Notes: generated from the sequence alone by a model not told the origin. DNA of 64,000 bases from Trichosphaerium sp. ATCC 40318 (GCA_038496445.1 JALMLS010000578.1:62001-126000), one strand, 5' to 3'; positions 48,317-57,200 are shown, numbered from the stretch's first letter. Program-made: numbers and translations.

Positions 48317-50412
48317 ATGGACGTTATGGACGTGGAGCAGGCTTTCGACATTAAAATTGAGCTACAAGATGTTCAGCCAGTACAGAGGAAAAGAATTTAC
48401 GTACAACAAGGTATTAGCCATGTGGCGTTGATAAAGTTAATTTCTGAGTGCCTGGACATACGATCTGTTGCTCTCATACGACACGTTGCTTATGCGCAGC
48501 CGAACGGACCAGACCGGGTAATATCTAATACCAATGGTGTGTGAGCTCTTCTACAACACGTAGCAGTACAACTAAAACCCCGGTAGATCTGAGAGTGGCA
48601 CTTGAAGCTGCAGAAGCGATGGGGTTGCAGACTAAAGCCAGTCCACGCCTCACACTCAAGGTGCGGAAGTATTCAACTATTGTGACTTGTCTTGCGCTAA
48701 CTCATCATTCAGGTGTGGCTTATCGGCGCTTCGTCGCCTTTCGCAAGAAAAGAGCCTTTGAAAGAGTACGTGTTAATACTGTTTTTAATTTGGTTTATTT
48801 GTGAGTAGTTTGGAACGACTGCTACAACTCGACTGCATGCATGACTTTCGCGAATTTGTATTCAACTCGGAACCTATCGATAAGGGCAACTTTGGCAAGG
48901 TTTATCTCTGCGATTGGAAGGGTGAAAGGGTGGCCATCAAGAGAATAGGCGTGCCTAAAGGGTATCTAAAGCGTACTGGGAAAAGCTTCGCCCAGGTGGT
49001 CCACGTATGGTTGTTGTTTTTAGTCTGTACTTTCTGACTGAGGCACAGGAAGAGATCAGGATATTTAGCAAGCTTGACAATCCTCACGTCATGAAGCTTC
49101 GAGGCATAAGTGCGTTTAATTTTCAAGTTCAGAGGTATTTAACGAGTTTGGCTAATTCTTTGATTGCGTTATTTCAGCTACTGATGGTAGTTACCTTTTT
49201 TTAATCATGGACTACATGGCTAATGGTACTATCATCCATTCTTTCCGTTAAAATGGGCGGGTTGTTGTTTAATAGAGCATGCAAGGTAATCTTAAAACGC
49301 GCATTCAGCACACTGAATTTGAAAACAAAGAATTGAAGAAGATTGCTATTGACATTGTACGAGGCATGGTACACACAATCCACCAATATCAAATGCGTAC
49401 CTATACACTAATGCTTGTTTCTTAGATGTACTTGCACAACCACAAGCCTTGCATACTACATCGCGACTTACATGGAGGTACTAACTAATCCCTAAGTCCA
49501 TTCTTCTTTTTTTTTTGTGAAAATTTTTATCTAATGTCACACTACCTGCAGGGAATATTTTGGTGCGTACATACATAAATACATGGCTCAATTAAAGTGC
49601 GTGTCACATGAATAACAAGTGGCAGCTTGACTGTGATGGCAACTGCAAGATAAGCGATTTTGGATTGTCACGTGCCCTTGATGCCAACCAAGGGGACAAG
49701 TGGTACAGCGTAACAAAGGGGCATATGGGATACATGTGCGCAATCCTTGGTTTAGACATGGCATAGAGTTACTCACATTGTTAGGCCTCCTGAATCACTT
49801 GTAAACAGCCACCGTGGCTTCAAATTTACACGTGCTGGGTTGGTTCAAATGTTGTTGGCGTAGTATTTGACAATCCGTTTGATAGGGACGTGTTCTCATT
49901 TGGTGTCTTGCTGTGGGAGATGTTCATGGGCATAGAGGCACATGGTGATAACATGGACAAGTGGAAAATGATGGTTGCCACATGATACACAACATGCACT
50001 ACCGTTATTAACGCCAAATAGATAGTAAATGGAAAACGGCGGACTCTCCGTCCCACATGGCCTGTGCCAATACAGCAGATTATCACAGCTTGTTGGGCCC
50101 AATTACCATCTGAACGACCCACATTTGAAGCAGTATGTGCATGCACCATTATGGATTGTTTTTTAAAGTTTGATAGGTACAAGCTCAGCTTGTGGCGTGG
50201 GATGCTTCGGGAATGAACAAAGCAGAAGCTATTACATTTCCACTCCTAGTTTCATATGTACAAAAAAAGCAGCCAATTATCAACTAATAACCTAATAGAC
50301 CACAAATCCTTACACAGACACAGATCCATATTCTAATATGAGTATATCAGACTCAGAAGATTCAGAAGACTCAGAATCATCTGATGGCTATGAAAACAGC
50401 ACCATGAAATAA
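48317..50412 (+). CDS. Tyrosine-kinase-like (TKL) protein kinase with a PB1-like N-terminus
   Basis: IDKGNFGKVY, VAIK, HRDLHGGNIL, KISDFGLSR, YMPPE, DVFSFGVLLWE, CWAQLPSERPTFE. Confidence 0.93.
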
Positions 50413-50579
50413 AGTTAGATATTTACTTTTATTTGTTTTCTTTTTTCTTGTTTCAATAAAATTGTTTCTTTGGTGCAATAAATTCATTGTACATAAAGAC
50501 ATGGTTTTTAAACATATCCAAAAATTGACAGTTAATTCAAAGTAGCATTCAGACCTATGCCTTGGATTTTGACTCATAC

Positions 50580-51635
50580 TTAGCCTGTACAGCCCACACA
50601 TTTGTCCTGTACTTAATCTGTACATGATTATACTTAATCTATACAGGTGATACTATTGACCTGTATTCTACCTGTAAGTTATGTAAAAACATGTTATCAG
50701 TGGATAAGAGAGTTTTAATGTTATTAAAACATCTATCTAAAAAGTAAAGAAAAAAACTACAGTGGTGGAATCAAGCAGCATGTGAATTGTACTTTTTGAG
50801 CATGTTTTTTTTCCACACATATGGCACTGTATTTATGATAAGGCAGGATTGGCAAAAAAAGCAGGCAAAATGGCAAAAACATGTAGTTGGTTGATATAAA
50901 CTGGGTATTGTTTATGTGGAGATAGTTTTATGTAAAGGTTGTAATAATTGTACAGGTCAAAATTCCAATTCCAGACCTGTACTAAACCTGTATGAAACCT
51001 GTACTTTTGACACCTCTTTTCCATACAATGTATGTGTAAGCACCACATGTGTGCCAAAACCACAACCATCAAAATACAATGACAATCAAAAAATCCAAAA
51101 AAATTGGTGCAATTAAATGACAGCTTGTAATCATAAGGTACAAAACATGTATTATTAATAAAAGAGGGTGTTTTAAGGTTATTAGGACATTTACTTAAAA
51201 AGTAAAAGAGAAACTTAATAAAGTGCAAAATGTAGCTTTTTGCTGAATTTTATTGTTTTATTGCATAACTTTGGTCTGACTCCCACCATTTTTAGACAAA
51301 AATGACAGAAAATATGTATTTGGAGTAGAATAAGGATATTATGGCCTAATAGCTCTATTCCACCACTTTTTAAAGATGATCATGGGTTGCAAGTTTTTTT
51401 GAAATAGTCATTAAATTGTGGATATTAAGTTGGGTTTTAGGACTATCTTCCAAACAGGTCAAAAACATTGTTGTTTAGTGGTAATGGGGTGTATTGTAAT
51501 GTGTTGTAATGTAAATGTGCTTGTAATAGTTAAAAAAACAATAAACCAATTCATTGTTTTACTATTTTGTGTACTTAACCCATACAGGTTCCATACTTTC
51601 AACCCATACTTTACCTGTACATTATCTGTACTCCT
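50580..51635. mobile_element. Degenerate DNA-transposon-like remnant (hAT/MITE-like ends, ACC[TG/CA]TAC subterminal repeats)
   Basis: CAGTGGTGGAATCAAGCAGC at 50760 is an imperfect inverted copy of 53364-53383; about a dozen CCTGTA/TACAGG/CCCATAC units. Confidence 0.55.
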
Positions 51636-51873
51636 GATTTTACTGATGCAAAATAGCACATTTTGAGGATGCATATTTTCCACACATATCACACATTTTA
51701 GGCAAAACATCGCTTTATAGAAAAAAAAAAATAACAATTTAATACAACTATTACATTTCAACTTTTCAAAGCAAGATCAAAGATTAACTATGGGAGTACA
51801 ATCTCAAATTCTCTCTTTGGCTTCAAAAGAACTTTATGTTTAAAGCTACAATGAGTTTAGGGTTTAGAGAGTG

Positions 51874-52973
51874 CTCATACTTATAGGTCCTTCTTAGGTG
51901 CTCGTACTTGCTTACCCTTCCAATTAGGTGGTTTGTCTGTTTCTGATTTTTCCACCATTGCCAACAACTTCAAAGTGTCTTTATGGTACCGACATACCAG
52001 AGTTGATACTTTATATTCAGATTTGTGGGAATCTAAGCTTTTTAGTATAGGAAATAAGTGTTTCACCCAGTGGTATAAATTCACCAAAAATGTCAAAATA
52101 CCTCCTACCCAAAGGTATGCTAAAGTTTCTGACATTGTCAAGCACAACACACCCAAACCTTCTGAAGTCAAATGGCCTCCCACATTACAGGTTATGAGGG
52201 AAAAAGAATGGAAATTCCACAAAATGTTGAAATCTGTCAGCTCTCTTAGGGTGTCAATAGGCCACGTGATATTTTATGGCATTATTTACTAAAACTACTA
52301 CCAATTAAACACTCAGACTCTCAGTATCTGCTTCAACAACACTGTCTTTTTTTTGAATGGAAATATGCCATAGCTATAGGAAAAATGCTTATTAGCCACA
52401 TTTCTACTGATCTTAGTGGTTGGTCTGACAATACTTTGAAATATTCATCTAACAAAGAAAAAGCCATATCAGCTCTATTATGCATTGTATCTGAAAGTGT
52501 AGGAATTCACTTCTCTTTGACAATGAAATTCCACCCACACAAAAAGTCATATTTTGGCATCAACAAAACATTTTTGTTGCTCTTAATGTAGATAATTCTC
52601 AATGTGAATCTTTACCAGATGATAAAAAATACACAGATAGAAAGTTATTGGAAAGCTACCAACTGGATTGCTGACTTTAAAGATACATGGGAAGACTGGG
52701 GAGCTGGTTTACCTCCCACACCAATCTCCCCCTCCACTACCTTCTACTAACCCCAAAAACACTTATATCAACAAACAAGTTTGTCCACTAACTCCACCAA
52801 CCATTAGTAGGCAAAGACACAACTATTACTCAGATGACGAAAGCTCAGATGACTGGGATGAAGATCTTTACTTTGAACTATGATAAAACAATGTAACAAA
52901 AAACACGCATGGCTATTGTCGTCCACAGCACAATAAACCCACCTTTTTATTAAAAAAAAAAAAAATTAAAAGA
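51874..52973 (+). mobile_element. 5'-truncated, degenerate non-LTR retrotransposon (L1/Tx1-like 3' end)
   Basis: TCLPFQLGGLSVSDF..SLWYR (post-RT LP...GGL motif), HCLFFEWKYAIAI (zf-RVT-like), AATAAA at 52932, A14 at 52952-52965, 12-bp direct repeat GTTTAGAGAGTG at 51862-51873 and 52974-52985. Confidence 0.8.
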
Positions 52974-53260
52974 GTTTAGAGAGTGAGCTGCAATTAATTG
53001 TACCCTGTAAACCATGCTAGAGACTACACAAAGGAGCTATTGATGCTCTATTTTGTTTTTTTGAAGAAACAATGTAACTTTAAACTTAATACCATTTTAT
53101 CACACTTCAGCAAGCTTGGTGCTTGTTTGCTTTTGTACCAACTAATTGATGTTGAGTAGAAGGTAAAGTTTCCTTTGCACAGTCATTTACAAGTTAAATA
53201 ATGGGTACAAGCCAGTAAAAGTACATTTTTAAACAGTTTTGTTTGTAAACAAATTAATAA

Positions 53261-53383
53261 CAGGGGTGGAGTTGGACAAAATAAGCATGCCTAAAACATG
53301 TCATATGCATGGAAGAGAAATGTGCCTTTTGTGTGGAAAAAAAAAGAGTTCAAAATGTGTGGTGCTGTTTGATTCCACCATTG
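53261..53383. mobile_element. ~120-bp MITE-like element
   Basis: Ends CAGGGGTGGA...TCCACCATTG are imperfect inverted repeats; the left half recurs at 54028-54076 and the right half recurs inverted at 50760-50827. Confidence 0.55.
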
Positions 53384-54288
53384 AACATTTTAGGCTAACA
53401 TATTAACTGTATTTGCTGCAACTTCAATATGCAGGCATTTGGTGGCTTTTTGTATCTTCCAATGAAAGTGGCAATTGTATTTGGTATATTGAGTGCATGT
53501 GCATAAAGAAAATGTATGTTCTTTCTGTTGACCATTCAAATGGAGAATCACAATGTTTAGAAAGGTTTATCAAGGTTTGTTCCACACACTTTTTAGCTAA
53601 TTTGTGTTTGTTTACACTTTCATAGGTTCATAATGTTAATAGAAAAATGGTCAAGATCATTTTTTTGTCATTTTGAAAGTGATCAACCATTTTCAGGATG
53701 GGTGATTGATTATGCATCATTATGTGCAATACTTCATGATGAAGTTGAAAATGGGTTAAAAGTGCTAAGAATGACAGTTGTCAAAATCAGAAAATAACTG
53801 CTTCAAGTACTTTTGTACATAGAAAACTCACTACAAGACAAAGTAAATGTAGCAAGGTCTTTTGTAGTTTTGAGACACCTGTGGCCCAAAATCAGTCTAA
53901 TGAGGTAAAGTTGAAGTTTCTTTGTCATATTACCTAAATAAATGTAATGTTAGCTCTTATTTTTTTTTTTGGTAGAATCCATTCACAAACTCACAAATTC
54001 AACACAAATTTTTTTACAAACAGCATAAATGGTGGAATTGGACAAAATACACATGCCTAAAATGTGCCATTTGCAGATGAGGATTTGTACATGTGGTTGT
54101 TGTAGATTTTACAGACATTGTTAGTGTTGTTGTAGCAGCCATTGTATTGTTTTAACATAAATAACAATATGTGAGTTTTTATGAGGATGGTTTGGCATCA
54201 CCTTGTGGTGTGCACATATTTTATTGGATTCTACCTGTGAGACATTACTAAATATCAAAATTATACTAAATCAAACTGTACAAGGTAT

Positions 54289-57200
54289 TTATTGTTGTCC
54301 ATGAAGAGATTCTATATCTGAGTCTAAAGATATAATTTCAGTGTCAGTTTCTTTTGCAGGATCTGTTTTGGAGGTTACATCTGGTGTTGTTGTTTCATCT
54401 AATTCTGTAATTTCATCTGGTTTTGGTTGATCCACATCAAGCATTGGAGTCACTTCTCCACTTTCAAGTAATGCAAGGTCTTCACTTCTTTTACGAATAT
54501 AACATCCAAATCCAATACCAATAACAACACCAGCAGCAATAAGCAACAAAGCAATGGATACATACAGGTAAATTAAATTATTGGTATCAAACTGGTTTCC
54601 ATTTCCAACAACGACTGGAACAGCTGGTGGACAGTCATAACGGATGAATTTCATCAAGTTGAGTCCTGTTTGGAAGTCACAAGTATCGCCTGCAATTCTA
54701 CGATATCTGGCCATGTGTTAGTGGGCAAAACAAACATTAATACACTGTACCCTATTGAAGCAATAAAGTACTCGCTAGGTATACAACTGGAAGGTGGCAA
54801 AGGGCCAGTGGTGTTGACACAACGACAAGCCTACAACAAAGTTAGGTATGTTTGTAACCTGGATATTTGCGTGTTACCTCTGGCAAATCTTCTGCAGTAC
54901 CACTCTCCTCTGTGTAGTCGCATAGACTACCATCAATATCTCCTTTGCGTTCAAATCCATAGTCGCTACAAAGAGATTACACCTCGAGACTGCTAAAAAT
55001 AGAAAGTAGCGGTTTACCATTCGTAGTCATCATAGGCGCATTTACAATGTGACAGTGTCACCTTTTTACTATCCTCTCGTCTGTCAAAGCATTGCGCTGT
55101 CTGAAGCAATGAGCTTAAGGGTAGAATTCAGGTAAAAAGAGTACCGGCTTTTTTCTCGTGTAGACGACTTCATGCCCAAGCAAACACTTATCTTTCCTAC
55201 GACCATCATCAACTTGCCAGGTTTCATAGTCGGAGTCTGGAGTATCAGGTGCGTCATCGCCTGTACAATCTCTAAACTGCAACTGTTCAAAGTTGACATG
55301 AATCATTCTTCCGTTCTATGCAAGGTCAATCCACGTAATTGACGTTCAATCAGTACGCCAGTGTTTGCATCATAGCCATGCACCAGAAACCGCCTAGTCG
55401 TCTTTCAAAAACAAAATAACAAGCAAAAACGCTAAAAATAACACAGTGCAATAAGCTGAAGTGGTTAGCTTACCGTGCAGTTAAATCAGTCTCCGTTATA
55501 ATCTGTTTGACGGTAATTGGTGCTGGTAATGTTAGGACTTGAGGATCAGTTGCAAATTCGTCAGTTGTAAATAGAAGATTGGCGGTTTGTCCAATGGGCG
55601 CCATTACAACCACAGCGCCATGATAGCCTATGCTTACCATGTGTCTACCAGTTGTGACGTTACGCCATGTGAGGCCAGCATCCCGTGAGAAATATGTGCT
55701 GTGTCCAGTGGCAGTGAATTGAAAGCCAATATTGCCTTCAGCTACAACTAAGCCGGCCGCCTTTATTGTTGACACAGGCTTGTTATTTTGCGCCAAAGAC
55801 AACTGCAGCGCACACGGCAACTTTGTCTCGCCTGGTGGCGTAACCATTTCATTGCAAGTTGCTCCCTTTGGGTGGTGGACAGAGCTCCACTCACCTCCAT
55901 TATCGTACGTTATTAGAGTACGCGCTATTACGCCTATTTGTTGAATATCCACTGGGTTTTCCACTTGATTCGCAAAGTAGTGGCCTTCCACGCTTGAAAC
56001 AGTTGAAAACTGGTACCTACATGGCACATCTTAGCATCAACGCAAAAAAAAAACTCAGGCGATAAATTGATGTGCAAAGATTGTATCACGAACCTGTGTG
56101 GTGCCGACCTAACAATGTAGTCCATAGACTTTACAAAGTTAGAACCTATTGCATCACTCACATACAGCGTTCCTAAACCGTACACGTCAGCTGACACATA
56201 CGCGCACAAACTAGGCTATCTTACCGTAAGAAGCCGGGTCGTTGCCTGAATGATAACCCAGAAATATGGCATCGTCCATGTTCAGAACTGTCTACACCAA
56301 TTGTCAACAAACTACACAATGGCAACCAGAGATAGATTGACGTACAAACTGAGAGTTTAGAGCCAACTCCACAGGAAACGTTGAACGTATAAACCTGTCC
56401 GAATCGCTGCTAACATGGAAGGCCTGCTTGCTGTCTTTAAGCTATTAATAACTCCTGTCAATACAAGAAGTGCTCAGTGTACTTGCAAGCGGGCTGACGT
56501 ACTGTCACGACAAAAACGAAGCGAGGCGAAAAATAAAAACCCAAGGAAGCATCCAACAACACTGATGTTGTGCGTTCCGCTAGTACAAGTCGATAAACAT
56601 TTATCTCAGCCTAATTAACGCAAGCGGGATTCGTACGCACATTTTTTAAAGCCGACATACTTCTTAAACACAGCATCACCTAATTAAAGTGTTCCAAGTT
56701 AGTTGGGTGGCAATGAGGTTGGGTAGTGCGTACTTTGGCGTAGCTGTCTTTGAAAACCGGACTGTTTTGGAAAGGCGTCAATGTACATGGTTTCTTCAGT
56801 CACATTGCGCGTCCCAGCCCAACCCCAATCCATGTTTCTCACTACACAATAAGGGTTAATACTGTGGCTGAACGGATATTGTGGTAGTTGTGGTTGTGGT
56901 TGAGGTTGTACCATATTTCTCGATGAAGACTTCATTCGTTCCAAAATCTTTGGACACGTACAGCTCGTAGTTGCACCTGTCTCTCGTTATGTGCGAGAAA
57001 CACTCTTTGAGGAAAATGAGTCACTGACTAAACGTATAGAATTGATTTGCATACCACTTGATAGCGCCAAAGCCATGTACCACTCTGGTTGTGTTGGATG
57101 CAGCTTGAACTGCAAATACATTTTGCTTGATCGCATACTCTCAAATGTCTGTCCTCCATCCTTCGTTAGCCAATTCCAAGTGCCCCAACCTTCTAGAATA

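Follow-up and report, generated by a model that had tools for sequence, protein, structure and literature searches.

An old transposon nest between two genes of Trichosphaerium sp. ATCC 40318 has probably lost its CpG dinucleotides by decay of methylated cytosines

Why should one spacer between two genes lack almost every CpG dinucleotide, when the DNA on both sides of it is rich in them? The question is posed by a 64,000-nucleotide stretch of the genome of Trichosphaerium sp. ATCC 40318 (GCA_038496445.1, JALMLS010000578.1:62001-126000), which we analyzed as a whole and refer to as the window; all positions are counted from its first nucleotide. The original prediction for this DNA described the interval 50210-54490 as a CpG desert over a nest of transposons, and regarded it as the footprint of CpG methylation aimed at repeats. 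Our results suggest that the spacer, which separates a kinase gene from a sortilin/VPS10-like gene, is probably an old nest of dead transposons that was long kept CpG-methylated and decayed by deamination of 5-methylcytosine (5mC). A direct count over the 4281 nt of the interval (GC content 0.33) gives exactly 7 CpG, at 51711, 51903, 51990, 52265, 52838, 52906 and 52920, in exact agreement with the positions listed in the prediction; the two stretches said to be devoid of CpG (50210-51710 and 52925-54490) were found empty, with zero CpG across 50209-51710 and across 52921-54493.

Analysis of the dinucleotide composition reveals a deficit that is specific to CpG. The ratio of observed to expected CpG (o/e) is 0.06 in the desert versus 0.885 in the left and 0.918 in the right flank, so the remainder of the window is indeed CpG-rich; at the o/e of the flanks 103.6 CpG would be expected, and the Poisson probability of finding 7 or fewer is 2.7e-35. 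CG is the sole depleted dinucleotide among the 16, and TA is not raised. The o/e of GpC in the desert is 0.97, which argues that base composition is not responsible, while TpG (1.41) and CpA (1.46) are more abundant than elsewhere in the window (1.19 and 1.18), as had been noticed from the sequence. The four longest CpG-free gaps of the window (1574, 1503, 573 and 275 nt) all lie in the desert, and the longest one outside it has 200 nt. Local AT-richness does not account for the deficit either, since 15 AT-rich 500-nt tiles outside the desert (GC content of 0.36 or less) retain CpG o/e values of 0.62-1.25. The genic 1.7-kb tiles of the window, which serve as the genic control for CpG o/e throughout this work, have a median of 0.90 (range 0.76-1.12).

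Searches of the own genome, which covered the assembly of 70.28 Mb in 642 contigs, show that sequences from the interior of the desert recur at more than 330 sites spread over dozens of contigs. Three element families, here termed A, B and C, account for 2.4 kb of it (Table 1). The claim that all transposon remnants of the window sit in the desert holds for what we searched, namely these three families (nhmmer) and a 249-kb library of transposon-rich loci of this genome (blastn), the matches to which are confined to 50469-54075.

5-Methylcytosine deaminates to thymine, which turns CpG into TpG, or into CpA if the other strand is hit, and comparison of the window with other copies of the same elements reveals exactly these changes. 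Where young copies read ACCCGTAC and CCGTACGG, the window has ACCTGTAC and CCATAC; their CCGTAC appears in the window as CTGTAC or CCATAC (both are seen in the decayed 5' subterminal array of family A), ACGTGCC as ACATGCC or ATGTGCC, and TGCGTGG as TGTGTGG or TGCATGG. In BLAST alignments 221 out of 248 CpGs of other copies correspond to TG or CA in the window copy. The family-A copy with core, 3' array and 3' terminus, when aligned to a consensus built from eight young copies, keeps none of 23 aligned consensus CpGs, 19 of which have become TG or CA and 4 something else, and an alignment-free count of motifs finds 0 intact and 9 decayed. Its divergence is 11.5% at non-CpG sites and 11.7% for non-CpG changes of C/G to T/A. 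In the family-B miniature all CpGs of the consensus array are now TG or CA. Because the window copies carry TG or CA where young copies keep CpG, the loss postdates insertion and took place in this genome. These comparisons demonstrate mutation of CpG to TpG or CpA after insertion as the mutational mechanism.

The rate of this process can be estimated from 16 distinct young family-A copies with a non-CpG divergence of 1.2-3.4%. They have lost 26% of the consensus CpGs, nearly all to TG or CA, compared with about 1.4% for non-CpG C/G transitions, i.e. a per-site excess of about 10-fold (range from about 1.4 to 35, with about 35-fold in the copy L016). An excess of about 10- to 35-fold is within the range for methylated CpG in animals. 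The losses are spread over all 57 sites and thus arose independently, not by descent from a master copy that had already decayed; in addition, TG and CA products are intermingled, and a hand count on the per-site output gives no significant runs, which fits independent deaminations. A divergence of 11.7% at a ratio of 10- to 35-fold suffices to erase every CpG, therefore no burst-like process is needed for the window copy. Two other ideas were tried and rejected: strand-specific TG/CA tracts, as would be left by a burst-like process (the number of runs is near expectation for L016, L023 and the window copy), and shielding of the array CpGs relative to the core (73% kept in the arrays and 81% in the core, Fisher P 0.10).

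The families themselves differ in kind. Family A is a non-autonomous cut-and-paste DNA transposon of about 1.25 kb (1.2-1.3 kb), with the termini CAGTACTGGAATCGGGA ... TCCCGATTTTACTACTG (CAGTA...TACTG) and a 2-bp target-site duplication of variable sequence; young copies include L022:850-2119 (G000:C461), L018, L021, L015 and L017. It consists of a CpG-poor core (o/e 0.39 even in the young consensus) and two subterminal arrays with a 35-nt period built on the palindrome CCGTACGG (CpG o/e 1.83), which look like a phased set of binding sites for a transposase or a repressor. None of the elements found could be identified as its autonomous partner. Family B, likewise a non-autonomous DNA transposon, carries a terminus akin to that of family A, CAGTGGTGGAATCGGACAG, and its arrays consist of AAACGTGCCC and TTGCGTGG; besides an element of about 1.1 kb (L005:107-1218) there are many miniatures of about 115 nt that comprise little beyond the two termini and are flanked by 2-bp duplications (e.g. 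L030:192-306, L030:529-644 and L027:449-563). In the window, the larger family-B fragment begins with the 5' terminus CAGTGGTGGAAT, continues with a short array, also decayed, and then an internal segment, and has more than 20 copies elsewhere at 90-95% identity, while the solo terminus has 24 genome copies that are 86-98% identical. Family C is a long interspersed nuclear element (LINE); in L002 the part homologous to the window copy is preceded, at a distance of 350 nt, by an RVT_1 domain (E 8.5e-31). The window copy terminates in a poly(A) tail (about 52950-52965), which identifies it as a 5'-truncated insertion, and it holds 6 of the 7 surviving CpGs.

Table 1. Features of the CpG desert and its borders
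Feature	Position	Strand	Evidence or remark
CpG desert	50210..54493	.	7 CpG, o/e 0.06, TpG and CpA raised
Family A, decayed 5' subterminal array	50564..50676	+	nhmmer E 1.3e-4, weak match
Family B, DNA-transposon fragment	50760..51051	+	5' terminus from 50760 by pattern search; nhmmer 50827-51051, E 2.3e-28
Family A, copy with core, 3' array and 3' terminus	51013..51648	+	nhmmer E 1e-47, 5e-54, 7e-6
Family B, subterminal array, decayed fragment	51656..51746	-	nhmmer E 1.3e-7; side-by-side comparison with L003, L005, L019
Family C, 3' end of LINE-type retrotransposon, 5'-truncated	51861..52971	+	nhmmer E 1.8e-193 versus L002
Family B, miniature element of about 130 nt, both termini	53261..53392	+	nhmmer, pattern search
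Family B, solo terminus	54030..54075	+	nhmmer E 1.1e-4
Largest CpG-free stretch without other genome copy	53393..54029	.	own-genome DNA searches
Other CpG-free single-copy stretches	50210-50563, 52972-53260, 54076-54288		own-genome DNA searches
Kinase gene, last coding exon (left flank)	50064..50216	+	stop codon TGA 50214-50216
Sortilin/VPS10-like gene, last coding exon (transmembrane helix and cytoplasmic tail; right flank)	54289..54714	-	open reading frame

The desert is not limited to the transposons. The four single-copy stretches of the spacer add up to 1493 nt and contain 0 CpG versus 32.5 expected (Poisson test), and the final 205 coding nt of the sortilin-like gene (54289-54493, minus strand) contain 0 CpG versus 5.6 expected (P 0.004). 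Thus, the footprint follows the interval and not sequence homology, and a regional mark fits better than one triggered by homology, because single-copy spacer and a coding exon are CpG-free as well. At the left border the last CpGs of the kinase exon are at 50196 and 50208, and the desert starts six bases upstream of the stop codon. The CpG-free zone thus enters the sequence coding for the sortilin-like cytoplasmic tail by 205 nt, yet stops within six bases of the kinase stop, i.e. its spreading is asymmetric. The sortilin-like gene is identified by an upstream exon (55470-56027) that matches Sortilin-Vps10 with E 3e-28, and the kinase exon matches the C-terminal end of the PK_Tyr_Ser-Thr profile (233-255 of 258) with E 0.005, below the Pfam cut-off. 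Pfam scans of the open reading frames inside the desert returned nothing significant. We also found a short frame from ATG to stop (50339-50413) near the left edge of the desert, beyond the kinase stop codon. It is rich in Ser, Asp and Glu and built on three copies of a 9-nt repeat similar to AGACTCAGA; it could be 3' untranslated region, a missed terminal exon or nothing.

The genome encodes candidates for the machinery that such a mark would require. Family profile searches were made in six frames and exon by exon, with the exons left unjoined. PF00145 matches two loci. The first (L033, G000:C7:645014-648181, minus strand), here called the C7 gene, has motif I FAGCGG, motif IV GGPPCQGFS, motif VI ENV, motif VIII QxRxR and motifs IX-X TVRECARGQGFPD ... 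GNAV, with a BAH domain upstream, and for three of its exons DNMT1 structures are the best PDB match (E 7e-16, 3e-9 and 4e-7), DNMT3 being absent from the lists; judging from these motifs, it is predicted to be a BAH-containing, DNMT1-type maintenance methyltransferase with intact catalytic motifs. The second (C59 gene; L032, G000:C59:69978-73133, minus strand) is another PPCQ-type methyltransferase, too divergent to classify. The SRA domain (PF02182) occurs at four loci, C547 (E 5.5e-20), C42, C91 and C615, two of which are near-identical copies, each preceded by a cysteine-rich exon. Thus, both the DNMT1-type enzyme and the SRA readers whose presence had been put forward as a check of the prediction have counterparts here. 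The Tet_JBP profile gave no match in the genome search, which cannot show absence. The SRA copies L037 (G000:C91:166222-169338) and L038 (G000:C615:1259-4375) differ at 55 of 3112 aligned positions (1.8%) and, since the divergence is so low, represent either haplotigs or a gene duplicated recently; CpG/TpG and CpG/CpA transitions account for about 10 of the 55 differences, with CpG making up about 5.6% of the sites.

We propose the following scenario. The whole spacer between the kinase and the sortilin-like gene would have been held for a long time as a silent, CpG-methylated domain, in which a maintenance methyltransferase of the DNMT1 type would restore the mark on newly replicated DNA, probably with SRA-domain proteins that recognize hemimethylated CpG as its guides. 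The methylated CpGs would deaminate to TpG or CpA until almost none remained, and the neighboring genes, being unmethylated, would retain theirs. Methylation would thus be the cause, the DNMT1-type gene would encode the responsible enzyme, and the mark would presumably still be present today.

Several observations weigh against this scenario or restrict it. The footprint records the past, and the mark may be gone. Neither the RFD domain of DNMT1 nor a DNMT3-type enzyme was detected in the six-frame searches, which cannot show absence. Part of the depletion was already there at insertion, namely in the LINE and in the family-A cores, and presumably results from the same process at work in the lineages of these elements. 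Family-A copies of the same age have lost from 4% to 83% of their CpGs (chi-square P 1e-28): L016:853-2083 (G000:C2, at about 1.148 Mb) lost 83% at a non-CpG divergence of 2.6%, and L017:2172-3333 lost 4% at 2.4%. Finally, among at least 150 scored RVT_1 matches, the 30 best-scoring reverse-transcriptase loci of the genome (L048-L077, on 29 contigs), which have uninterrupted frames of 750 to 2663 codons, show a median CpG o/e of 0.78 (range 0.46-1.10), compared with 0.90 for the genic tiles of the window. These intact elements are probably the youngest ones, and their CpG level is compatible with age-dependent decay. Nevertheless, transposons as a class are not CpG deserts in this genome, and methylation is not a uniform property of all of them, given that same-age copies vary from 4% to 83% and reverse-transcriptase elements are near-normal. 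Whether other transposons are depleted, which had been proposed as a check, therefore has a divided answer. As for the original claim that CpG is methylated in mobile DNA only and that genes are spared, it is favored by the decay after insertion, by the CpG kept in flanking genes and AT-rich non-coding DNA, and by the presence of DNMT1-type and SRA genes; its strict restriction to mobile DNA holds only in part, for the single-copy spacer and 205 coding nt are CpG-free, and not all mobile DNA is depleted. Apart from this, several kinds of intact and possibly active retroelements seem to be present in the genome in large numbers.

The unequal loss among copies could be explained if CpG methylation were an on/off state inherited copy by copy, via the DNMT1-type enzyme alone and without a de novo DNMT3, with the arrays then filtering competence for transposition. 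We consider this extension rather doubtful. If true, it would account both for the spread from 4% to 83% among same-age copies and for the untouched intact retroelements, and a methylated copy with decayed CCGTACGG arrays would no longer be mobilizable. A system with maintenance-only methylation has been described for Cryptococcus, which a DNMT1-alone state would resemble. The CpG loss of a copy shows only a weak, non-significant trend with the CpG level of its neighborhood (rho 0.34, P 0.22, n=15).

The same inequality would be expected if the repeats were mutated actively and in bursts, either by a process similar to repeat-induced point mutation (RIP) or by a CpG-preferring deaminase. The strand bias of L016 (31 TG to 12 CA) and L019 (15 TG to 5 CA) also speaks for such hypermutation, and nothing that we tested accounts for the bias of L016 or for its loss relative to same-age copies. 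However, such a process should leave the single-copy spacer and the host exon alone, and both are depleted; the copies exhibit every intermediate degree of loss, without significant TG/CA runs; and many repeats that are 98-99.7% identical remain CpG-rich. TpA/ApT is 0.89 and (CpA+TpG)/(ApC+GpT) is 1.28 in the desert, compared with 0.97 and 1.11 for the remainder of the window, which is the opposite of RIP of the Neurospora type. Active hypermutation, which the original prediction had offered as an alternative to methylation, is thus unneeded, and we regard it as very unlikely.

Also very unlikely, in our opinion, is a purely inherited composition, i.e. that elements already poor in CpG inserted into an AT-rich non-coding spacer without any process specific to this locus. 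It is true that family C is CpG-poor in 17 out of 17 copies examined, with only 7 ancestral CpGs inferable, that the family-A core is poor from the outset, and that the GC content of the desert is below that of the window (0.33 versus 0.41). Yet the arrays of families A and B, which are rich in CpG in young copies, have been converted completely in the window, and this largely refutes the proposal as a full explanation; the AT-rich tiles elsewhere in the window keep their CpGs, the non-repeat spacer has none, and depletion of a whole family would itself require a CpG-specific mutational cause. An assembly artefact or a contaminant block between host genes is hardly credible, as the elements of the block recur on dozens of contigs of the same assembly, and the block passes directly into host exons at either end, with the depletion extending into one of them (at 54289-54493).

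With deamination of methylated CpG as the preferred explanation, the inferred pattern can be compared with known systems. The closest one is Acanthamoeba castellanii, where enzymatic methyl sequencing (EM-seq), whole-genome bisulfite sequencing (WGBS) and nanopore data reveal methylation only at CpG, at 1.3% globally, with hypermethylated regions making up 3.4% of the genome; it is enriched on repeats, intergenic DNA and silent genes, leaves exons and introns largely unmethylated, and involves DNMT1/DNMT3, with LINE and long terminal repeat (LTR) elements as preferred targets and DNA transposons not enriched overall (PMC12344493). The pattern deduced here is of this type, as both organisms are amoebozoans in which a CpG-only process affects repeats and intergenic DNA, spares genes, occupies a small fraction of the genome and is accompanied by a DNMT1-type enzyme. 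In contrast to Acanthamoeba, where 5mC was measured, what is seen here is the mutational scar; moreover, in Trichosphaerium derivatives of DNA transposons are heavily hit, the 30 intact reverse-transcriptase elements are not visibly depleted, and DNMT3 was not detected. In Naegleria gruberi, likewise amoeboid with transposon methylation, 5mC lies on silent genes and on young transposons, is placed at cytosines of every context (CX) and is maintained by DNMT1 orthologues (PMC12344493), whereas the footprint described here is strictly CpG. With these two methylomes published, such a defence can no longer be called poorly documented in amoeboid protists (PMC12344493).

The comparison with more distant systems is also instructive as to the differences. 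Fungal RIP, together with the CpG-biased hypermutation of transposons reported for some basidiomycetes, produces C-to-T changes that are concentrated in repeats and differ from copy to copy. The Trichosphaerium footprint shares both traits, but its context is CpG rather than CpA, it extends over single-copy spacer, many near-identical repeats are untouched, and the RIP indices deviate in the opposite direction. In vertebrates methylation is the default state of the genome, and it is the unmethylated islands that stand out. The decay of CpG in old vertebrate transposons involves the same chemistry, the same products and a rate excess of roughly 10- to 35-fold; unlike vertebrates, the genome studied here is CpG-normal (o/e of about 0.9, with no sign of default methylation in the genic tiles of the window), and depletion is the exceptional state, found in islands. 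In Physarum polycephalum restriction-enzyme studies of the 1980s revealed hypermethylated DNA composed of clustered, scrambled transposons. It is likewise an amoebozoan with methylation in transposon clusters, for which the evidence is biochemical, while here it is a footprint in the sequence.

The genome defence suggested by the desert is of a known kind, and no new mechanism is revealed. On the practical side, CpG deserts can be mapped to annotate the old heterochromatic islands of this assembly at little cost, and families A and B, which have about 50 CpGs each and dozens of copies of estimated age, would, given a methylome, provide a clock for methylation-driven mutation. For the biology of the organism, our results offer sequence-level evidence for a third amoeboid lineage, probably a marine amoebozoan, that would confine CpG methylation to islands of dead transposons and spare its genes, which agrees with the recent view that eukaryotes ancestrally used DNA methylation to repress repeats by means of 5mC.

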